In this document: piece after piece, positions 5,812-57,313 of the stretch
Position numbering within the stretch: position 1 is the first letter of the stretch
How the letters are laid out: every line of letters starts with the position of its first letter
DNA from: Podarcis tiliguerta
Lineage: Eukaryota
Reading direction: 5' to 3' (one strand)
Assembly (NCBI GenBank): GCA_965153285.1
Contig: OZ229111.1
Length of the DNA: 64,000 nt
Made by a program: the position numbers and the translations under genes
The notes under the pieces: generated by a model
Database searches by the model: none
Told to the model about the DNA's origin: nothing
The model's input: only the letters and a program-made list of their open reading frames with translations

Positions 5812-7390
5812 TATGTGTAATGGACAGGGCAGAGGAATCTTCCCCACCCAACCATCTAATCCAACACCAGATGACACATCCCTAATCCCTAGAAGTGAAG
5901 ACCTGCTGCCATCTTCAACATCTGCTCTGTTTTAAGCTCTTTCCATAGCCTTCCAGTCAGCCCTTTCCATTATAACTAGGCCATAGATAATGGGCCTCAG
6001 TCATCTTGGGATGAAGGGAGGACATTTGGTTTTCTGAAATTATGGCAAATTACTAGGGTAAAGCCCTCAACGTGCAGGTAAACCTTATTATCCAAACACT
6101 CATTAGTCAAATCCCAATTAGTTCTTGCTCAAGGTACAAATTTTGGTTAAAAATGTAAATCGGTTGCAGAGCAAAAACATGCTAATGCTACAAATCAACA
6201 CTGTCAACTGAAACACATACTCTATCGGTTAGCATTGGGCTTAAGCCTCCCACCATGCTAGAATGGAAAATTGAAAGGAAGACAAGAGACCCAGTAATTC
6301 AAATGACACAAGTAGCCCTTACTTGCTTTGCTGATGAAAAGGGGAAATCTGAAATGTGGAAACTGAGCAACCTCAGCAGAACGAAAGAGCCACCTTCACC
6401 CAATATAAGGCCTGCAATTTGCACATGCATGCAATGAAATGCCCTATGGGCAAACTATCTTAATTCATTTCATTATTAGAGCATCCCTCAAATGTCAGCT
6501 TCTGGCTTTATCGCCAAGGTTTCTCATAGCAACGAGGTGACTTCCATTCCAAAATAGGGCTCCCATTAACAGCAAAGTTCTTTTGTGAAGTCACCAGACA
6601 AGAGGAGGTAGTATTTTATTAGAAGAAAGCATATGTCAAAAAGATGAAAAGGGGAGTTCATCATTAAATGAAAATGTCCATCCTCAAGCTGCTGCTTCAT
6701 ACTTCGGCTCTGAGAACTTTGTTTGCTTCAGCATAAAACTTTGCTCTTCGTGTTGTTTGCTTTGTCTGGATCTCAGGAAAGCTGGAGCAAAGAATTATAT
6801 TTCATTGTGGCGCGGATATGGAAAAGAGTGATTATTTCATGTTGTAAATCCACAGCAGTGCCACAATTATGAATACCAGCAATCAAACATTAATGCTGTT
6901 AACATTAGAACAGCAATAATAGTTTTACAACTGCACATAAAGAGCTTTTACCCTGTATTAAGTAGCACAGATGGTATGTGACAGTCTCTCATTTTACTTT
7001 CTTCCTGAGTCTAGGTATGAAATCAACATATTAAATATTACAGATGCTCCTGGTGTGCTTTTGTGCTGCAGGTTTTATGAGCATAAGGGAAGCAGAAACA
7101 TAACACACAATGGGCTGTCCCAAGACGTTTTTCTACCTGAGGAGCAGAACAAGATGGCGCTTCCCTGCATTCCATGTACAGAAGCTGACCAGACCAGTAG
7201 TTGAATCTTCAGCAGTAGCAGTGCCGCAGAGCCCTCTATTGCGTCTCAGGGCAGCATGCTTGCTTAGGGGGCACAGGGTAGACAATGTGGTATACACAGC
7301 TCTGTCTAATTCCTGTCCTTCAGCATTTGCTGCCAGTGTTGTCTGCCTCACTCTGCCTCATGTTGGTGCCGACCCTTTCAGTTGTAAGTA

Positions 7391-7632
7391 CAGTGGCACC
7401 TTGGATTAAGAACTTAATTCATTCTGGAGGTCCGTTCTTAACCTGAAACTGTTCTTAACCTGAGGTACCCCTTTAGCTAATGTGGCCTCCCGCTGCCGTC
7501 ACACTGCCACCGCACGATTTCTGTTCTCATCCTGAAGCAAAGTTCTTAACTCGAGGTACTATTTCTGGGTTAGCAGAGTCTGTAACCTGAAGCATCTGTA
7601 ACCTGAAGCATCTGTAACCCGAAGTACCACTG
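7391..7632 (-). mobile_element. Tc1/mariner-type MITE
   Basis: TA|cagtggcacc ... gtaccactg|TA; reverse complement of the 2642 family. Confidence 0.85.
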
Positions 7633-7634
7633 TA

Positions 7635-7859
7635 CAGTGGTACCTCGGGTTGCAAACACTTCGGGTTACAAACTCCGCTAACCCAGAAGTAGTACCTCGG
7701 GTTGCGAACTTTGCTCCAGGAAGATAACAGCAATCGTTCGCCAGCGACACAGTGGCAGCGGGAGGCCCCATTAGTGAAAGCGCGCCTCAGGTTAAAAACG
7801 GTTTTGGGTTAAGAATGGACCTCCGCAATGAATTAAGTTCGTAACCCGAGGTACCACTG
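7635..7859 (+). mobile_element. Tc1/mariner-type MITE
   Basis: TIR cagtggtacctcgggtt / aacccgaggtaccactg with TA flanks. It shares the TA at 7633-7634 with the preceding copy. Confidence 0.88.
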
Positions 7860-20428: not shown

Positions 20429-20560
20429 NNNNNNNNNNNNNNNNNNNNNNNNNNNNNNNNNNNNNNNNNNNNNNNNNNNNNNNNNNNNNNNNNNNNNNNN
20501 NNNNNNNNNNNNNNNNNNNNNNNNNNNNNNNNNNNNNNNNNNNNNNNNNNNNNNNNNNNN
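20429..20560. other. assembly gap (132 N)
   Basis: Run of N. Confidence 1.
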
Positions 20561-35704: not shown

Positions 35705-35984
35705 TGTCAGGGGTTCAGGAGCAGAGGCACAGGAGAGGGAGGAAATAGAGAGCGAGGGGGAGGAGTCCGAAGGAAATGTCAGCGATGACAGCAATCCGAG
35801 GTCTCTGAGTCTTTCCAGTGAATCGGAAGATTCACAGAAAGAGGCCCCCATGGTCAGGGCAAGGGGGGTGCCGAGGGGGACACCCCAGGAAGAAGGGGCC
35901 AGGGGGGACTCAGAGAGCAGCAGTTGGAAATCTGGACCAGCGTCCACACCAGAGTGGAGTAGAGGGGAGGAGTCCCAGGCATCG
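35705..35984 (+). repeat. truncated 5' LTR (first 280 bp)
   Basis: Matches 38509-38788 with one mismatch, then jumps directly into pol. Confidence 0.95.
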
Positions 35985-35986
35985 CG

Positions 35987-38900
35987 ATGCAGACAGCAGC
36001 CATTACCGGCACGCTCAGCTCCAAGAAGAAGAAGTTCATCTGGACGGAGCAAGTGGAGCAGTCCTTTCAGAACCTTAAGCGTCTCTTCTCGTCCGAAGAG
36101 CAGCTACTGCATGTGAATCCCAGCAGACCGATGAGAGTTGAAACGGACGCCTCAGACAGAGCCGTGGGCGCAGTCCTGTTGCAGCAGAACCCGCATGGGG
36201 ACTGGAGACCGTGTGCCTTCTACTCTAGAAAGCTCAGCAAGTCAGAGCAGAACTACACCATCTGGGACAGGGAGTTGCTGGCCATTCATGCAGCATTCAA
36301 GGCGTGGCGGCACTTCCTCATCGGAGCCAAACACACAGTGCAGGTTCGCACGGACCATAAGAACCTGGAGTACTGGCGTACGGCACGGTTCCTGAACCAG
36401 CGGCACATCAGATGGGCGGAGTTCTTTGCGGATTTCGACTTCCGGATAGAGTACATCCCAGGCGACAACAACATCATGGCAGATGCACTGTCCAGAAAGC
36501 CGCAATACCTCGAAGAGGCGGCACGAGCAGCGGCCAAGCACATTTTCGCACCGAAAGCGTGGGCGTGCGCCTCAGCAACCGTGGACCTGGATGCTGTCCG
36601 TAGAGCGCTGCAGGAGGACCCCTTCACACAAGCCAAGATGGAGGAGGTGCACAAGGGCACGGTGAAGGACGACGAGTTCCAGATACGCGACGGATTGCTC
36701 ATCCGCAGAGGGGCCCTCTACGTACCGGGAGACGACCTCCGCGCGAAAGTACTGCAGCAGTTGCACGACGCACCCACCGCCGGGCACTTTGGCAAAGAGA
36801 AGACGGCAGAATTAGTAGCCAGAGAGTTTTGGTGGCCCAAGATGCGGGGGGAAGTCGCGGATTACGTCTCGAGGTGCGACACCTGCCAAAGGGCCAAGTC
36901 AGTGCACAAACCACCGGCGGGACTGCTCGAACCGCTGCAGACACCGAGCGAACCGTGGGAGAGGGTGGCCCTGGATTTTGTCACGGATTTACCCAGCTCG
37001 AGGGGCAAGACGGCAGTGCTAGTGGTGGTGGACATGTTCACCAAAATGGCCCACTTCATTCCGTGCGCGAAGGTGGCCACGGCGGAACAGACCGCCAAAC
37101 TGTTCATAGACCACGTGTTCAAGGTTCACGGTCTGCCACGGTCTATCCTGTCCGACCGGGGGCGGCAGTTCATCTCGAACTTCTGGCAGAAGCTGATGGG
37201 TTTCCTGAACGTCAAGATCAACCTAGCGTCCGCAAGACACCCGCAGACCAACGGACAAGCGGAGCGAGTCAACGCAGTCATGCAGCAGTACCTGAGATGC
37301 TATGCAAATCAGCAGCCGGCAACATGGGTGGACTACCTGCCGCTCGCTGAGTTCGCCTACAACAACACGAAGCACGTGTCCACGGGGGTGACACCGTTCT
37401 TCGCCAACAACGGGAGGCATCCCAGAACCTTCCCGGGATTAGAGAGACTGGGGGAGGGGGAGCCACAAGCAGCGGAAGCCTTAGCGTCCGAATTGCAGGA
37501 AGTTCACGAACAGCTTTGGAGGCAGTTAGAACTAGCTAAGCACGCATACAAACTGCAGGCTGACAAGCACAGAAGGGTTGGGGAAGACATACAGGTGGGA
37601 GACTGGGTTTGGTTAGCAGCCCAGGCAGTGCCGACCAGATCGTTAGCGAAGAAGAAGCTCGGACATAGGCAGCTAGGACCTTACCAAGTCGAGGCTCAGG
37701 TCAATCCAGTGGCCTTCCGGTTGACACTTCCGGAGGGATCCAGAATGCACCCAGTGTTCCATAGATCAGTACTCACGCCCTACAAAGCACCTCACAGATT
37801 TCAGGAGCCGGGCACGGCACCAGACCAGCTCAGGGAGAAGTCCACAAGGCGGGGGTCGCCAAGAGGGGAACCCATCAACGAGGTCACAGAGATTTTAGAC
37901 TCGAGATGGGGGGAAGAGGGAGTAGAATATTTTCTCGCCAGCGAAGGTACCCCGGCCAGCGCCAACCGTTGGGTGCCGGACTACGCGTTGGACGCGCCTC
38001 TTCTCAAGGAAGAGTTTCATGCCTTGTTCCCGCAAAGGCCCATGCCAGCCGAGTATTTCGACGACTGGCTTTTCACACCCACGCTTTCAGCCAGCACGTT
38101 CCAGGGGTTCACCTCGGACGAAGAACCGGCACCAGACACACGTTCCCCGGAGGGATCGCCCTCGGGGTTTGCCTCAGACCGCTCTTTTTGGTGGGACGAT
38201 CGACCAGAGGAGGGGTGGAGCAGGAAGTGGCTGGGGGGTCCTTGGCAGGCAACGGCCCCAGAGGTGAACGGGGGAGAGATGGACATGGACGTGCTGGGGG
38301 AGGACCTTGGGTTCGAGCACGGCGGCACAGAGATGGAAGCAGAGGAAATTGAGGTCGGCGAGAGCACGGAGGACGAGCCGGACTTATCCGACTGGATGCA
38401 CGCCACGGGGGACGAACTGTATCCGCCATTCACCCCAACGACGGAGCACCCAGCACCCACACCTGCAGGAGGGGAGGGTGGAAGGGGGGGCTTAGAGGGG
38501 GGGATGGATGTCAGGGGTTCAGGAGCAGAGGCACAGGAGAGGGAGGAAATAGAGAGCGAGGGGGAGGAGTCCGAAGGAAATGTCAGCGATGACAGCAATC
38601 CGAGGTCTCTGAGTCTTTCCAGTGAATCGGAAGATTCACAGAAAGAGGCCCCCATGGTCAGGGCAAGGGGGCTGCCGAGGGGGACACCCCAGGAAGAAGG
38701 GGCCAGGGGGGACTCAGAGAGCAGCAGTTGGAAATCTGGACCAGCGTCCACACCAGAGTGGAGTAGAGGGGAGGAGTCCCAGGCATCGGGATCAGGCAGC
38801 GCGCTGACAGCGGGAGGACATGAGGCAGGAGTGGCCACGCCTCCATCGGAGAGCGAGGAAACGGTCGAGAGGAAGGTGGAAGGCTGCGCGCGCGCGCCAA

Positions 38901-39145
38901 GTTCAAATGTACAGGAGGGGGCAGCAGTTGGCAGCCCGGATAGGGAGCCAGGTCCTAAAGCCCGCCGAAGAGAGAGGGAGGAGTCAGGGGGGTCCACGTC
39001 TGTGTCGGAGGAATCCAGGAAGGAAGGGACCACGGGGGGTAGCAGGACCCAGAGGAGAAAGGAGAGACGGAAGAGGTGGAGTAAGGCTAGAGTCTTAAAC
39101 TGGTGTACAGGGGGCGGGGATTCAGATGGAGCTTCGCCGGTCTAG
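35987..39145 (+). CDS. pol: Gypsy Pol remnant: RT thumb/connection, RNase H, integrase (HHCC, DDE, GPY/F), chromodomain, long acidic/basic tail
   Basis: RNase H: ETDASDRAVGAVLLQ, RELLAI, TDHKNL, ADALSR. Integrase: LHDAPTAGHFG...CDTCQ, ALDFVTDLP, SDRGRQF, QTNGQAERVN, LGPYQV...HPVFH. Chromodomain: EVTEILDSR...EYFL...NRWVP. 1052 aa with no stops; gag, protease and the RT core are missing. Confidence 0.95.
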   Translation: MQTAAITGTLSSKKKKFIWTEQVEQSFQNLKRLFSSEEQLLHVNPSRPMRVETDASDRAVGAVLLQQNPHGDWRPCAFYSRKLSKSEQNYTIWDRELLAIHAAFKAWRHFLIGAKHTVQVRTDHKNLEYWRTARFLNQRHIRWAEFFADFDFRIEYIPGDNNIMADALSRKPQYLEEAARAAAKHIFAPKAWACASATVDLDAVRRALQEDPFTQAKMEEVHKGTVKDDEFQIRDGLLIRRGALYVPGDDLRAKVLQQLHDAPTAGHFGKEKTAELVAREFWWPKMRGEVADYVSRCDTCQRAKSVHKPPAGLLEPLQTPSEPWERVALDFVTDLPSSRGKTAVLVVVDMFTKMAHFIPCAKVATAEQTAKLFIDHVFKVHGLPRSILSDRGRQFISNFWQKLMGFLNVKINLASARHPQTNGQAERVNAVMQQYLRCYANQQPATWVDYLPLAEFAYNNTKHVSTGVTPFFANNGRHPRTFPGLERLGEGEPQAAEALASELQEVHEQLWRQLELAKHAYKLQADKHRRVGEDIQVGDWVWLAAQAVPTRSLAKKKLGHRQLGPYQVEAQVNPVAFRLTLPEGSRMHPVFHRSVLTPYKAPHRFQEPGTAPDQLREKSTRRGSPRGEPINEVTEILDSRWGEEGVEYFLASEGTPASANRWVPDYALDAPLLKEEFHALFPQRPMPAEYFDDWLFTPTLSASTFQGFTSDEEPAPDTRSPEGSPSGFASDRSFWWDDRPEEGWSRKWLGGPWQATAPEVNGGEMDMDVLGEDLGFEHGGTEMEAEEIEVGESTEDEPDLSDWMHATGDELYPPFTPTTEHPAPTPAGGEGGRGGLEGGMDVRGSGAEAQEREEIESEGEESEGNVSDDSNPRSLSLSSESEDSQKEAPMVRARGLPRGTPQEEGARGDSESSSWKSGPASTPEWSRGEESQASGSGSALTAGGHEAGVATPPSESEETVERKVEGCARAPSSNVQEGAAVGSPDREPGPKARRREREESGGSTSVSEESRKEGTTGGSRTQRRKERRKRWSKARVLNWCTGGGDSDGASPV
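38494..38508 (+). other. polypurine tract
   Basis: agagggggggatgga immediately 5' of the 3' LTR TG. Confidence 0.85.
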
Positions 39146-39271
39146 ACCCTAGACGTAGAGCTGGGGCGCTGAGGCTTGGAAATGGAAACTATACTTCAAT
39201 AAAGACTTTGTTACATTACTACCGGCTAGCGTTGGTCCTCTGTGAGCTGGGACCAGGAGCCAGCTCTGACA
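38509..39271 (+). repeat. complete 3' LTR (763 bp)
   Basis: TG...CA, terminal IR tgtcag/ctgaca, AATAAA at 39198-39203. Confidence 0.95.
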
Positions 39272-40503
39272 CTAATGAATGAGCTTTAGTCATTGCAGGC
39301 CAAGAATTATCCACACTCCATACCTCTCATGCTGTCTTGTGGTGTTTAATATAACAGATCCAGTGACAGGCAGTTATGTTGATGTTTCTGGTTCCATGTA
39401 CAAAAACAAAAAATGGAAGTCCAGCTAAAAGAAGAAAAGAGCACTCACATATTTCCTTAAATGACCCATTTGGGAATCGTGTGCAGAGCCACTGTCCTAC
39501 TGTTTGGTCTAGGGCTGGCAGCTGGTGCCAGAAGATCAGCAGTGATATGGTACCAGGGCTCATGTTCTGAGAGGTGGAATGCTAGACAATTTGACAATTG
39601 CCAGACTTCCTCTCCCCATTCCTAGTGGGGTCCTTCCATACATGTAAAATGTTTTCAGTGAAGCTTTTTCACAGGGAGATAAGAGTGATAGGAAAAGCTG
39701 CAGCTGAAGACATTTCAATGAGCTGTTACAAAACACTGAAAAACAGCAAGAAAACACAAGAAAACAAAAGTTGTCACATTTAGATGCAAGGGTTAGGTTA
39801 CTCATTGCTCTTTAGTTGATGCAATAAACATATGTGCATTTCCTATCCAGTTCATGCAATTGATACTTGTTCTCTATTTCCCAACAAGGAAAACCAGAAA
39901 TGCTGCCTTGTCTTAAATGCAGCCAGTAGTCTTTTAGCAGGGACAAAGGGAAGAAGGCATTTAACATTTCTGAAAGCCCTTGTTTTATTAGACTATAACA
40001 CTCAGTTTTGCAGTATTGACTGTTGAGATTTTCTGTGTTTGGGGACCAGGCACTGCAGTGACTCCATGTCACAGCCAGACTACGATGATGAAGTTGCATT
40101 CTGGCATACCGCTGACATTAAAGATCAATGGAGCAACTTATTTCTGTGAAATGGAAAATCCATTAGAATAAAGTATATTGATGAATGATCTGTTGACAAA
40201 TAAGCACTTATTCAAGTTACTCCAAAGACTATAACTATCATGTGCTGCCAGGTCTAATAAATATATTTATTTGGATGAGTTCACTATTGACTGGCTCCTT
40301 ACGCATACTAGCAATATTAGTAGTATACCATGAATATAAAAACAACATCTCATAAGTACAGTTTATTCATTTAATACAGTACCACCAACAGAAGGGCCTC
40401 TCTATTAAGATTCCCTTCTATATAAGGGAACTGTGCTATTGGAGGACTTTGAAAGATAAAGCTACTGGTACAGACAACACAAGTATTACTCAGGTGTTAC
40501 TAT

Positions 40504-41295
40504 TGTGTTACCAGGCGCGACAGCCCCAGCCCCCAGGGATCACAAGAAAGAAATAAAGACAACGTGTTATGGAATTAAAATTAGGCTACAACTTTATTCA
40601 AATTTCCAACTGTAGGCAGACCTTGGCTTAGGCCTTGGGCATGTATCCCTCCCAACCCCCCAGCCAGGGGAACTGGGGCACATCAGGGCAAGTGGGGTAT
40701 GGGGGTACTCTATGAGACGTAAGTGTAGCAGGCAGCCAAGCTCATATCCCCACATGAAGGGTAGTTCACTGACAGCCTTTCGGTGTATGGCCAGTGACAC
40801 CCATATATATAACCCCATTAAGAGGGACCCTGGGATCGCCGCCACAGGGGGCTGAGTCCCCACTTCACACACACCCCTGCCCCATTATAGGGAAGAAAAA
40901 ACTAAAGGATTCCACCCAAGGCCATAACCACCAAAGTTGTGACGACCTGCTACGGGGAAGACAAAACCTGCCAATGCAGGAAAATTTCTTCCCAGACCTT
41001 CAACAGCATCCAGTCAAAGACCACATCAGCACCCGCTAAATAGTTAACCTGCAAACAAGAAAACATTAAACAAAGGGAGGGTAGGGAGAGTGAACCTCCA
41101 AAGCAGACTGCCTGGCTGTTGCCAGCTCCACCCCCTATTTAAACTGGGGCTGGCCCCACCTCCCAGCAAGAAGCTTGATTACTGAGGCTGGGCATGAACC
41201 TCTGAATAATAACCGAGAAACAAGCCAGCCCCCTGTTTCTAGTAAATTCCCTGGGAACTGTAGCCTTGTGCGCAATCCCGCAAAGGGCACCCACA
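40504..41295 (-). mobile_element. ~790-bp structured repeat, copy A (possibly DIRS/Ngaro-related terminal repeat or unclassified solo LTR)
   Basis: Homologous blocks shared with 52960-53743 (cgtagca..c.tcacaactt; cctaagccaa; aataaagttgt.gccta). TTTAAATA box near the 5' end and an internal inverted repeat. The superfamily assignment is tentative. Confidence 0.6.
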
Positions 41296-41568
41296 TATAA
41301 AGTGTGAATGCTCATTATTACTGTTCTGAAAACACACACACACACTTTTGCAAAAGTTTTTCACCCTCTGCAAAAGTGCTGGTCATTTTGCAGCTGTTGT
41401 TGTGGGGTTGAGTAATTTCACTGAATTTATTTTGGGTGGTATTCCATGAGAGCATCCAGTCAATGCAAAGATTTTCATTTGCACAATGATATTTTTCCCC
41501 TTCTCTTCCCCTTGCACCCTTCTCAAATTTCCTCCAGAGGGTTGGAGGCACCTCCAGAACATATGTAC

Positions 41569-41766
41569 CAGCTGTATGCACACTATACCTTTCAAGTACA
41601 TTCAAAGCACATTCCCCCCCCCCCTCAGAGAATTCTGGGCACTATCATTCACCCCTCACAGAGTTACAAACCACAACAACCCTTAATAAACAACAGTGTG
41701 CCCAGAATTATTTGAGAGGAAGAATGTTCATTGAATGTGCTTGAAAGGTATAGTGTGTACAGAGCC
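41569..41766. mobile_element. palindromic MITE
   Basis: cacactatacctttcaagtacattcaa / ttgaatgtgcttgaaaggtatagtgtg long inverted arms. A similar element lies at ~47090-47290. Confidence 0.7.
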
Positions 41767-46944: not shown

Positions 46945-47502
46945 CTATACTTTAACTAGCAGAGTCAGCATTTCCACTATTGAGCCTTGTGGGTGTTCAG
47001 CTATGCTCAGCTGGAAGAGCCCTTCTAGGAACCATCCATACTTTTCCCGTTGCTAACTTTGTGATGAAAACAAAACAAGCATTTAGCTAAACCATCAAGT
47101 CCACATCAACACCATACATTTAAAGTACTCGTATAATAGTTTAATCGTCGTGGCTTCTCCCAAAGAATCCTGGGAACTATTGTTTGTTGTGTGTTAGTGT
47201 AATTGTACCTTGGTGACAAATAAACTACAGTTTCCATAATTCTTTGGGAGAATCCATAACGTAAAGCCCTTTAACAATACATGGTGAGGTTATAGCCGGG
47301 TTTAGGGAACTTCTGGCTTTCCAACTGTTGCTAAACTACAACTTTGAATAGCCCCAGAAAGCATGGCCAATACCAGGGACAGTGGGAGTTGAAATGCAGC
47401 AAAAACTGGAGGACCCAAAGTTCCCCACACCAATCTAGCTGTTGTTTGTTATATCAATTTCCCTCCTTACCCCATAGTGTTCATTTACAATTAAACATAT
47501 TC

Positions 47503-47874
47503 TGCTGCATTTCAAGACCCTCAAGCCAATCCCCATTAGAATAAAGAAATTCACACTGACGCAGAATTTTGGTTTAAGGTTAATGGGCAAAATTTAGGCC
47601 ACAGCTTTATTGATTACGGCAAATGTGAGCGGTATTGGCTTAGGCATTGACAAAAGACTATATCAGACTCCTGTCCCCTTTGCAGGAAGTCAGTAAGGGT
47701 AAACCACCAGAAGAGGGAGATGCTCCGCTGCATCTCCCCCGGTGTTCCCAGAGGCCTGGCATGGCCCTAGCCCCTCAACCAGACTTTGGACAGGATCCAG
47801 GCCCCGGATTCCTTTAACGGAATACCCTTGGACAATGGAGGGGTATTCAATCATCAATAAGCCAATGCCTAACC
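47503..47874 (-). mobile_element. structured repeat, copy B (5'-truncated)
   Basis: Its reverse complement aligns block-wise with 53347-53743 (caatgcctaagccaatacc.ctcacatt...aat.aag.tgtggccta.attttgccca). Confidence 0.75.
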
Positions 47875-49216
47875 ATATCAGTTTCCCTCTTTACCCCATA
47901 GTGACCATTTACAATTAAGTATATTCTGTTGCCATAGTTCTTGAGGGAATTGTGCTGATAGTCTGCATGGAAATTGGACCTGTGTGCAGCACAAATTATA
48001 AAATGGATGGGGTGAGTCATGAGGTTTCCACATACCTAAATTGGTTTGCACCATTAACACCATGTCCCAAATCAGAGCAGGGACTACCTAAACTCCTGAG
48101 CTGTTCTGTGAATTCGTGTGCTCAAAATCCATTGCATTTTGCCATTTAAAATAAAGCAATTGCTGCATTAAAAAAACAAAACCAAGCTGATTAGGTGACT
48201 GCCCTGAACTCATGGGGGAGGGGATGCAGAGGTGGTAATGGGGAATCTTTCATTTTGATGGACGGGCCTAGGTTTTAATCACTTTCCCAATGAACTCCAA
48301 TCATAGCCATTTGAGGAAGGGATGTTTCATGTGATATACCAGTATGTGTTCCTTTTATTCTAATCCCTTTTCGATTTCCAACAAGCAACACCTACCTTAA
48401 TTGCTTTCCAACAAAAACACCTACTTTAATTATTTGTTTTTCATTTTGTTTGCTTCCTCTTATTTTTCCTTCTGTTTGTGCAAACTTTTCTCAGAGTTCT
48501 CCCCATCCTGCTGCTGCTGTGTGGGCGCATACTGGTTTGTTGCTTTTTACTCAGGATTTCCCCCCCTCTCCGTTTTAGTTTACTTTTATCCTTCTCCCTT
48601 TAGTTTTATGATTATGTGATTTCATTCTTTTGAATTCTTGCCATTCAGTATTATTAATATGTTTTTATAGTGCCCTCCCCCACACAGCTAAGCCTACTTT
48701 TCTTTTAAGAAATATCCCAGCTGTGTTCCTCTCTGCCAGTCTTTCATTGCCCACTTACTCATGGGCTCCTTCCAAAGATCACCAGTTTTCAGACTGATTA
48801 CCCACAAAACCCCAGAGAGGATTAAGTGATTTCTACCCACTCCAAAATGGTAAAATCTGTCCTTGCAGGAGGAAACATTGCACCTATTGCTCTGAAAGTT
48901 TGCAGATTTAATCTGCTCAGAAAGAACAAACTGCTTGTATACTGCATTCAATTATGGAAGAAAATAAAAGAGACATTTGTTCTTTTTAAAAATAAAATCT
49001 AAATGCTCCCTGAGTGAAAACATCTGGATGGATCCACCAGTAATTTGGCAGATTTAACTCACTCTGAAGAAGTTCCTTGGCCTGCAAATTTCACCCACTT
49101 CTGTGAATAGGTGAAACAATGCTGTTTTTACATTCCCCATTACATTCCATAGAAGGCAACAGAGCCAAATTGTAAAGACACAGAGAAGATCTGAAACAGA
49201 TTGCATTACTTCCTTG

Positions 49217-51531: not shown

Positions 51532-52959
51532 TTTTCACCAATATACACATTTGTATGCACACTATACGTCAGTAAACATTGCTTGGCTGGAGAAATACAC
51601 TGCAACATTTAAGTGCAAATTTTGAAGATACCTGCATTTCAGTTCATTTATTGTTTTAGACAAATGCTAATTTGCCTTTAGATGCAAATTGAATCAAATT
51701 TCTCTCCCTCCCTACTTCTGGGTAAATGAGTTGGTGGTGGGTCTTGTGCCAAGGGAACTCACAGATATTATGAAGGCTATGCCTCTCATCAGACCCCAGT
51801 TGGATAATTTGAGGCACAGCAAGTTGATACTAACAGAGCAGAGCTTGCAAGGACTAAACTTGTATTAATTGCAACAGGGAGCTACTGTAGTATATCTTCT
51901 TTTTACATGCTATGTAGGTAGTTTCGATAATAAATCAAATAAAATTAATCACACCCAAAAGCCATATGCTGAATCAGTAATTTAAGAGCGATTCAAATTG
52001 AAATTCAACAGCATTTTAATTATCACAGCCTGTCAGCCAAAGCTAAAGAGCAGTTTAACATGTTGCCTTTGGTTCATTCCAGTATGGTACAGGATCTTGC
52101 TCTCTCTCTCTCTCCCTGCTCTACCCTCTCTCACATGCATGAGAAAGAAGAATCAGGCCCTAATGTTTTACTCTGGCCAAAAAGAAACAAAAATCTAAAC
52201 TGAAACTGGGCAATTTCAAGATGCATTAAGGGAACAGAAAGAGCAAATTTGACACAAATGAGCAAGATTTAGATCTTGCCAAGCCCTTTGAGTGAGATGA
52301 ACATGCACAGAGAATTCTTCTACTGCAGTGTTAATTGCTGACATTCATTTACCACAAGTAGACTTGAGGAAATGCAATGTGTAATAACCATCTTCCTGGC
52401 TAAGATTAATGCTTCAGTAAACACAGAATCTTGGCTGTGATGCTGGACAATTCAATGCAATGTACGAGCAATGAAACAAATATAAAACGATTCCTTTCCT
52501 GCTCTTAATTATTGGGTTTCAGCAGTACACATTTCGGGGCAACTTGATTGCAAGTTTGCAGCCTGACAAAACTTAGCTAGGGACATGTTGATATATGCAT
52601 CTTTTATCAGTATGGTGTGTATGTAATTTCCAGGGCTTTGTGGCTGGCTAGGGAAGAAAAACAATTTGCCAGACAAGTGCACATGCTTTCTTAACATTTC
52701 AGTGTTTAAAATACCTCATGCACTAAAATGAGCTGTATTTCAGGGTGTTGCTGTTTGCAATTTCACAGAAGCCATTAAGCTTGGGCCACAAATAGAAATA
52801 AAATATATTCTTAACAAGATATTTGTCACCGTATCAAGGCATATCATTCAGCTTCCTTCACACGAATGTCAAACATGTAAACAAAAGAGAAATGGCCAGC
52901 AACTGTGTTTCTGGTCTGCTTTCAAGCATTCACTTAACAGTGTGTTTGTGGGGTGTGTG

Positions 52960-53743
52960 TGTGAAATCGGATCCTCTTCAAGGTGGGTACGTGTTGTGCT
53001 CGGGCCCCCAAGCATCTCCCACCTCCTGGTGTGGTCAGGGCTATGCCCTGCTCCACTCTAGTTGGTTGTTTCATGGTCACTTGGACCCTAAAGCCAATGG
53101 CTTGGCTTGGGGGACGGCCGCAAAACATTGTTTAATCCCTGCGCAATGTTTGCTAGACCTCTTTGCCTTTGCGCAGTGGATCACCCACCCCACCCCTTTA
53201 TCTGGTGTGTTGGCCTTCCTATGGATGTTGTTGGTCGCCTGTTTTGCAATGGGGACCTGGTAGGAATTTTTCCATCTGGCAGATTGGTAGAGCCATTTGG
53301 TTTTTGCCTACCGCGTAGCAATCATCACAACTTCGTAAGGTTTGGCGGTTAGGCATTGGGTCAGCAATGTGTGGGGAGGGGAGGGGAGGTGCGGCCATCA
53401 CCTGCCCCTCCAAGCTCAATGGTATTCTATTAAAGGGGTCTTGTCTGAAACCCCGCGGTAGGGGCCAGGGCCATACCAGGACCCCACAGGGGCACCAGGG
53501 GTGAGCTTGAGTTGGTTCACATCAGCGGGGCTCCCTCTGGCAGTGTTTCACCCTTTTATCAGATCCTCCACGATGCGGGTGGGAGTCTGATATAGTTTGG
53601 ATGATTCCAATGCCTAAGCCAATACCACTCACATTCTGTATTCAATGAAGTTGTGGCCTACATTTTGCCCAATAACTTAAACTAAAATCCCATGCCACTG
53701 TGTCTTCATTTTGGGGGGTGGTTGTGGGTCTCGAAGCGCAACA
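52960..53743 (+). mobile_element. ~785-bp structured repeat, copy C
   Basis: Homology to copies A and B. CCAAT and tttaa boxes, cccacccc tract, inverted repeat 53347-53359 / 53607-53620, ends gcaACA. Left boundary approximate. Confidence 0.65.
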
Positions 53744-54669: not shown

Positions 54670-55138
54670 TCAACTGTGTCGTACTGGTTAGGGTGTCAGG
54701 GTAGGACCTTGGAGACCAGAGTTCAAATTCTTGCTGAACCATGAAGCTCATTGAAACTTGGGCCAGTTACCATCTCTCAGCCCCATCTTCTTCACTGGGT
54801 TGTTGTGTGGGTAAAACCAAGAGGTGGAAGAACTATATACAATATACAGTGGTACCTTGGGTTACATACGCTTCAGGTTACATACGCTTCAGGTTACACA
54901 CTCTGCTAACCCAGAAATAGTGCTTCAGGTTAAGAACTTTGCTTCAGGATAAGAACAGAAATTGGGCTCCGGCTGTGCGGCAGCAACAGGAGGCCCCATT
55001 AGCTAAAGTGGTGCTTCAGGTTAAGAACAGTTTCAGGTTAAGAACGGACCTCCGGAACAAATTAAGTACTTAACCCGGGGCACCACTGTATTGAGCTCCT
55101 TGCCGGAAAGGCAGAATATAAATGTAAGAATAAATAAA
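54670..55138 (+). mobile_element. Squam3-like tRNA SINE interrupted by a mariner MITE
   Basis: B-box gagttcaaatt, ccatgaagctca...ttgggccagt...ctctcag...gggttgttgtg. It resumes after the MITE with ttgagctcctt...(TAAA)n. Confidence 0.7.
54847..55088 (+). mobile_element. Tc1/mariner-type MITE
   Basis: TA|cagtggtaccttgggtta ... taacccggggcaccactg|TA; same family as 2642. Confidence 0.88.
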
Positions 55139-56972: not shown

Positions 56973-57313
56973 TACACCATTGGCCTGAATATAAGCCTCA
57001 CTTTCCCCCCAAATTCCGACCATGAAAAGTCAAAGTACGGCTTATATTCATGACCTTATGGTAAGCAGCCAGGAGCACGGGGCAAACAGGAGCAGGAGTG
57101 TGGCAAAGCGGTGCCTGCCCCATGCATAGTCCCCCGTCCTCTCCCCCAAGGCCAGGAAAGGAGAGAACAAGGAAGGGGAAAGGCCACCGGCAACACAGTG
57201 TGGCTCTCCCCACCACTGCCCAGTGTGAGCAGCGAGGAATGGAGCGACTTATATTCAGGGTCCCCCCCCCCTCCAATTTTAAAGGTGTGGCTTATATTTG
57301 GGCCAATACGGTA
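56973..57313. mobile_element. Tc1/mariner (pogo/Tc2-like) non-autonomous element
   Basis: TIR attggcctgaatataagcc / ggcttatatttgggccaatacgg|TA, with the subterminal motif cttatattc repeated. Confidence 0.65.

Follow-up and report, generated by a model that had tools for sequence, protein, structure and literature searches.

The question raised by this locus is what kind of sequence can keep a pair of complementary arms while the ~275 nt between them change beyond recognition. In the 64-kb stretch of Podarcis tiliguerta DNA analyzed here (the window), the arms close a domain of ~305 nt in a repeat copy, denoted A, and recur in two further copies, B and C. The original prediction was that the whole domain is a structured RNA with a fold conserved above its sequence; the analysis below retains the closing stem (P1), abandons the fold of the interior, and places both in an abundant lizard repeat. 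Coordinates of the features are collected in Table 1, and copy A is read throughout on the minus strand unless indicated otherwise.

Table 1. Features of copy A and the related copies B and C, with positions in the 64-kb window
Feature	Position	Strand	Basis or remarks
Copy A, LTR-like unit (U3-R-U5), ~801 bp	40514..41314	-	contig depth jumps at ~40520 and ~41315, four species
Conserved block upstream of the 5' arm	40930..41012	-	alignable with C 53252-53346 (nhmmer); highest family depth
P0 5' strand (possible), CACAACTTT	40933..40941	-	overlaps the alternative helix ACTTTGGT/GCCAAGGT
P1 5' arm, GGTTATGGCCTTGGGT	40914..40929	-	core helix pair probability 1.0, 744-nt context
Variable interior, specific to the A-type subfamily	40641..40913	-	no significant structure; no similarity to B/C; high-copy
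TATA-like motif, TATATATA	40797..40805	-	~200 nt upstream of AATAAA; putative promoter
P1 3' arm, GCCCAAGGCCTAAGCC	40625..40640	-	core helix pair probability 1.0, 744-nt context
Poly(A) signal AATAAA	40593..40598	-	sequence
P0 3' strand (possible), AAAGTTGTA	40587..40595	-	overlaps the last three A of AATAAA
GU/U-rich tract, GTTGTCTTTATTTCTTTCTTGTG	40540..40564	-	~31 nt after AATAAA; read as downstream element, i.e. U5
TGG-initiated stretch after the unit end, possible primer-binding-site remnant	40488..40513	-	match to family continuation
Copy B, 366 bp	47509..47874	-	5' arm 47874-47860, 3' arm 47652-47637, AATAAA 47611-47606
Copy C, ~819 bp	52922..53740	+	5' arm 53347-53361, 3' arm 53605-53620, AATGAA 53644-53649

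A high-copy lacertid repeat with LTR-like anatomy

Family depth was measured with contigs of four runs, from four related lizard species, placed on positions 40300-41600 at 80% identity or higher. At this threshold, 1384 to 1901 contigs per run fell on 40520-41315, the interior included, and the summed depth over the element (~40520-41315) was 700-40000 in the four runs, compared with single contigs and a depth of ~12-43 in the flanks. Because this multi-copy depth is bordered by single-copy flanks, copy A, with its interior, is one member of an interspersed repeat that lacertid lizards carry in high copy number, a sharp-ended, dispersed unit as expected of a long terminal repeat (LTR). The left junction of copy A is spanned by flank-reaching contigs in runs X1 and X13, so that the insertion is fixed and older than the split of these two species. 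Depth reaches its maxima over both arms and over the block that precedes the 5' arm (40872-41003), and the segments that peak are the parts common to A, B and C. Furthermore, depth tends upward toward the minus-strand 3' end, and the last ~25 nt, with a single common stop point, are present in nearly all family copies. Beyond copy A, at 41488-41575, lies another repeat, of lower copy number, with a depth 10 to 25 times that of the flank in all four runs.

The layout of the unit resembles that of the LTRs of retroviruses and LTR retrotransposons: ~800 bp long and present in high copy number, it starts with TG, carries a TATA-like motif, AATAAA, a CA (40571-40570, at +22 from AATAAA) and a GU-rich tract, and ends ~85 nt beyond AATAAA (~40514). 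The putative promoter motif, the poly(A) signal and the presumed downstream U5 all fall inside the unit, as they would in an LTR. As originally described, the domain is located upstream of the poly(A)-like AATAAAGTTGTAGCC, which starts 26 nt past the 3' arm of A. Copy C contains a TATA-like sequence of its own, CTATTAAAG, ~215 nt before its poly(A) signal, and in both B and C, a GU-rich tract occupies the corresponding place, in the same layout as in A. The 5' end of A, TGAGCATTCAC (41314->41304), has the 9-mer AGCATTCAC in common with C (52925-52933). As for the termini, A begins TGAGC and ends GCGCC, C begins TCAAGC and ends GCGCA, and B ends ATGCA; hence, unlike an LTR, copy A does not end in CA.

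Beyond the 3' end, ~4% of the depth of the unit persists over a stretch that starts with TGG, which is consistent with a minority of junctions between a 5' LTR and a primer-binding site (PBS) among mostly solo LTRs and is a further point of similarity to LTRs. Copy A agrees with the family continuation in run X13 (place 40517) at 15 of the final 18 letters. No convincing match was found between this stretch and the tRNA sequences with which it was compared. In contrast to a complete LTR element, no paired LTR, internal gag-pol region, polypurine tract (PPT) or clean 4-6-bp target duplication could be shown for A, B or C in the window; the target-duplication candidates beside A and C are weak, whereas B is flanked by 58 bp, which is also unlike an LTR. 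A 13-bp candidate around copy A (40497-40509 / 41315-41327) was rejected because its left copy matches the family's own continuation. There is no transposable element protein near A, B or C, and the tyrosine recombinase or reverse transcriptase partner anticipated by the original prediction gains no support.

Copy B merits separate consideration. Its 3' end is the normal one of the family, and its 5' end falls exactly at the 5' arm, that is, at the base of the stem; around it, there is a direct duplication of 58 bp that is ~87% identical (47451-47508 / 47875-47932). Together, these features look like target-primed insertion, or break-repair capture, of an R-U5-like fragment and are unlike an integrase product. 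They also fit the view that the whole family is an ~800-bp non-LTR, SINE-like or Penelope-related retroposon, in which the stem and the conserved blocks would be recognized by the reverse transcriptase during target-primed copying. Apart from the 5' truncation of B and the long duplication around it, this view accommodates the rise of depth toward the 3' end, the single stop point of nearly all copies, and the failure to find an LTR pair or an internal region. Nevertheless, the 3' end of the element carries no poly(A), microsatellite or LINE-like tail, A and B boxes are not evident, no hammerhead or HDV-like ribozyme was found, and the copies extend ~55-85 nt past the predicted cleavage site, including a GU-rich element that would be absent from a processed Pol II RNA. 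We consider such a retroposon rather unlikely.

A polyadenylated RNA that is retroposed would be devoid of the downstream element, whereas an LTR regenerates that element as U5. Given that the DNA copies carry 55-85 nt past the predicted cleavage site, an LTR with the order U3-R-U5 fits better than a retroposed RNA. On balance, therefore, we lean toward reading copy A, an old and fixed member of this abundant lacertid repeat, as most likely an LTR of the retroviral type, be it a solo LTR or a 5' LTR that retains a PBS stub.

The window contains several other repeats. At 35987-39145, on the plus strand, there is an intact open reading frame (ORF) of 1052 amino acids with Ty3/Gypsy RNase H, integrase zinc-binding, integrase core and SH3 domains and a long acidic, Ser-rich tail, in an island of 53-58% GC. 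A 284-nt segment of the tail of this ORF (38509-38792) is repeated, at 99% identity, directly before the ORF start (35705-35988), which suggests a young element, rearranged or deleted at its 5' end, in which the pol tail enters LTR-like sequence. Copy A was considered as the tail of this neighbor and rejected, given that the element ends near 39270 and the two have no sequence in common. A squamate SINE-like repeat (ATACAGTGGTACCTC...) is present in several copies, including 2631-2885, 7389-7639 and 54838-55092, in both orientations and at 78-92% identity. A run of 132 N (20429-20560) represents an assembly gap or a masked stretch.

The closing stem P1 and its pattern of change

Copies B and C can be aligned with each other over ~340 nt, at 66-75% identity. 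By contrast, A can be aligned with B/C only in two collinear blocks, namely, A 40577-40638 with C 53607-53666 (63 nt, 71% identity) and A 40921-40966 with C 53302-53346 (46 nt, 74% identity), so that the A-type and B/C-type subfamilies have only ~110-150 alignable nt in common. Outside the element ends, the flanks of A and C show no significant similarity. With nhmmer profiles of both frames, A, B and C were the only copies detected in the window; a weak match at 57280 belongs to a different repeat. No family copies were found in metagenome and viral contigs searched with the frame pattern, and six metagenome contigs that matched a 20-mer of the deepest block turned out to contain only chance matches of 20-22 nt. 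No protein shares words with the translation of the 92-amino-acid ORF in the domain, and a string search of the literature with the family motifs returned no papers.

The arms of copy A read GGTTATGGCCTTGGG(T) (40929-40914) and (G)CCCAAGGCCTAAGCC (40640-40625), and those of copy C read GGTTAGGCATTGGGT (53347-53361) and TTCCAATGCCTAAGCC (53605-53620). Between A and C, the arms are ~89% identical and the adjoining blocks 71-74% identical, whereas similarity is undetectable in the interior. The core of P1 is a helix of 9 bp, namely, GGCCUUGGG/CCCAAGGCC in A, GGCAUUGGC/GUCAAUGCC in B and GGCAUUGGG/UCCAAUGCC in C. At core position 4, C-G in A corresponds to A-U in both B and C, which is the compensated double change on which the original prediction was built and which is present as described. 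The case is strengthened by a second, independent compensated pair at position 9, where the G-C of A corresponds to C-G in B and to a G.U wobble in C. In copy B, position 8 is a wobble as well (G.U); all one-sided changes in the core are of the G.U type, and every core pair is intact in all three copies. When A and C are folded at full length (744 and 759 nt), the pair probability of the core helix is ~1.0, although the outermost GGUU/AGCC register originally proposed is displaced by an alternative helix.

Over the 22 pairs of P1 and a less certain outer helix, P0, copies A and C show six differences, which make up two compensated pairs, a single G.U and a single break. When substitutions were placed at random, two or more compensated pairs accompanied by no more than one break arose in 0.1-0.4% of trials; overall, the simulation of neutral substitution over both helices gave P ~0.001-0.006, a value to be read with the caveats that the sample consists of three copies and that the helices were defined post hoc from these same sequences. 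In the MAFFT alignment, the 5' arm of A falls in other columns than the arms of B and C, and the pairs were accordingly counted by a script. The window contains 206 exact 9-mer inverted pairs at this spacing, such that an inverted repeat of 9-11 nt is not rare on its own, and the evidence for the stem is its positional conservation together with the pattern of change.

The same arms could, in principle, be a feature of the DNA that has no role in RNA, such as the terminal inverted repeats of a small nested DNA transposon, the remains of a palindrome, or paired protein-binding sites. Arms of 13-22 bp around ~250-275 bp are of the size expected of a MITE, they persist in two subfamilies in which the interior is wholly different, and those of B and C carry inverted CCAAT pentamers (ATTGG...CCAAT). 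However, there is no target duplication beside the arms, as there would be for a MITE, the arm motif occurs elsewhere in the 64 kb only at the chance level, and the interior is no more abundant than the surrounding frame. Moreover, the double change in A abolishes CCAAT in both arms and keeps their complementarity, and the non-Watson-Crick pairs of the core are all G.U when read on the minus strand and would be A.C mismatches on the plus strand, a bias that is not predicted by DNA symmetry. A purely DNA-level origin of the arms is, in our assessment, unlikely.

Thus, it is the complementarity of P1, not its sequence, that has been kept across two subfamilies. The ~1.0 pair probability of the core helix in the full-length folds of A and C indicates that the closing stem is probably constrained, that is, kept by selection, as far as can be judged from comparison of the sequences. 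Because this complementarity is retained in two otherwise divergent subfamilies, P1 probably works at the RNA level, as a helix on the sense strand of the element; a helix in single-stranded cDNA is less likely.

Adjacent to P1, the outer helix P0 could form over 9 bp (CACAACUUY with RAAGUUGUG), overlapping the poly(A) signal; in copy C, the corresponding strands are 53326-53334 and 53647-53655. The pair probability predicted for it is ~1.0 in C, whereas in A, it is 0 and an overlapping helix, ACUUUGGU/GCCAAGGU, prevails. We therefore did not accept P0 as a feature common to A and C, and it is included in Table 1 as a possibility only. In the conserved block upstream of the 5' arm, positions 40960-41003 form the deepest bin in all four runs. 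On the minus strand, this segment folds into a local hairpin, GGGAAGA...UCUUCCC around CCUGC/GCAGG, and the equivalent in C is GGUAGG...CCUACC, with weak support from RNAalifold on the two sequences.

The enclosed interior

The original prediction extended the conservation of structure from the arms to the ~275 nt that they enclose, and here, its parts have to be separated. The lack of similarity between this interior and B/C was borne out, with 301 of 500 and 233 of 500 shuffles, respectively, scoring as high. The rod-like nested pairing proposed for it (ggggca/tgcccc, aagtgggg/ccccactt and others) did not withstand the comparison of folding energies with dinucleotide shuffles. On the minus strand, the interior of A alone yielded z = -0.46, with 88 of 300 shuffles folding as well, and on the plus strand, z = +0.62; for the whole ~305-nt domain, the values were z = -1.70 (7 of 100 shuffles as good) and z = -0.62, respectively. 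Folding no better than shuffled controls was the outcome that the original prediction itself had named as refuting it. The domains of B and C do have a moderate advantage over shuffles in folding (z = -3.5 and -2.9 with the arms, -2.2 and -1.5 without them), and this advantage is also present on the opposite strand; the minimum free energy (MFE) structures of both are multi-hairpin shapes different from that of A.

Variation among the family copies points in the same direction. At seven places in the interior, the letter in A differs from that in nearly all other copies; four of these seven private letters are paired in the MFE structure of A, and two of these four pairs would be lost with the majority letter, so that half of the testable interior pairs require letters private to A. 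Skips and replacements within the interior are numerous among the family contigs (for example, 40664->40763, 40687->40886 and 40804->40880), and depth dips at 40652-40695 and 40828-40871, with the segments directly inside the arms being the lowest. The interior of A is not a conserved RNA structure, and its nested pairs are a chance product of a sequence rich in runs of G and C. Of the claim that structure is conserved while sequence is not, then, the closing stem stands, by virtue of its covariation, and the interior falls. An exact 11-nt inverted repeat, ACAGGGGGCTG / CAGCCCCCTGT (40844-40854 and 41226-41236), connects the interior of A to the upstream, U3-like part; being located in the family bin of the lowest depth, it is probably a chance repeat or one confined to A.

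These observations bear on the possibility that the ~305-nt domain is a functional structured RNA, self-cleaving as in retrozymes or rod-like and circular, with a fold that is kept while the sequence drifts. The covariation of the closing stem is what such an RNA would display, copy B starts exactly at the stem base, as would an RNA cut or initiated there, and the folding of B and C is somewhat better than that of shuffles. The resemblance to retrozymes and to Penelope-like elements with hammerheads extends to a non-coding, high-copy repeat with a stem and variable flanking duplications, as seen around copy B. In these elements, however, a hammerhead is present, whereas searches of Rfam 15 yielded nothing relevant and no ribozyme in the whole window at the gathering threshold and, for A, B and C, no ribozyme even at E <= 10, only six low-scoring matches far below the gathering scores. 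Combined with the z values for A, which come close to refuting this possibility, the different MFE shape of A, the many one-sided skips and the dependence of interior pairs on private letters, this makes a self-cleaving or circular RNA very improbable.

A possible role of P1 at the RNA 3' end

If copy A is an LTR, as we favor, the position of P1 within it allows a specific, if speculative, role to be formulated. The core helix and its extensions bracket the most variable part of the LTR, which we read as the promoter and R. Assuming that transcription starts after the interior TATA-like motif, the 5' arm would belong to U3 and the 3' arm to R; because the 5' arm would then be located upstream of the start, P1 could form only in the 3'-terminal LTR copy of the element RNA. 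There, at the RNA 3' end, ~275 nt would be looped out, bringing the most conserved block of the family to within ~30 nt of AAUAAA, and 3'-end processing might, as a result, be favored at the 3' LTR only. P1 and the upstream block would, under this scenario, constitute a cis-acting RNA switch that operates in the 3' LTR only and sets poly(A)-site use or RNA stability, a proposal that we regard as a long shot. Alternatively, R might begin at the 5' arm, in which case B would be R-U5 and the domain a structured R comparable to TAR or RxRE; the absence of a TATA-like motif upstream of the 5' arm counts against this arrangement.

The nearest documented analogue of the proposed role would be the Rex-responsive element (RxRE) of HTLV-1, which is located in U3/R of the LTR and forms a 254-nt stem-loop. 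In both cases, an LTR segment of 250-300 nt is looped out by a long-range helix beside the poly(A) signal, and in both, the structure would be complete only at the RNA 3' end if transcription starts inside it. The differences are substantial as well: there is no sequence or Rfam similarity between the two, and in HTLV-1, the structure separates AAUAAA, on its upstream side, from the cleavage site, on its downstream side, whereas in copy A, AAUAAA, CA and the GU tract are all downstream. Given that the poly(A) signals of A, downstream of the stem, are already normally spaced, a rescue of spacing would be unnecessary, and the mechanism would have to differ from that of HTLV-1. We also know of no Rex-like protein for the element to which copy A belongs. 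In HIV-1, the TAR and poly(A) hairpins are structured RNAs of the R region that involve or adjoin AAUAAA, with a fold conserved above the sequence; these hairpins are short and local (~50-60 nt), in contrast to the 275-nt loop and the 9-13-bp closing helix of copy A.

Copy A is, to a large extent, ordinary: it is a copy of an abundant lizard repeat rather than a novel RNA with a conserved fold or catalytic activity. The point that retains interest is that the complementarity of one short helix has outlasted the complete turnover of the 250-275 nt that it encloses, directly before a poly(A) signal. Should the helix prove to have a function, an LTR element from a non-model vertebrate would join the examples in which RNA structure controls 3'-end formation. 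If the proposed switch is real, it would represent a structural solution to the choice between the 5' and 3' poly(A) sites of a retroelement, one that is unlike the mechanisms of the HTLV-1 RxRE and of HIV-1.
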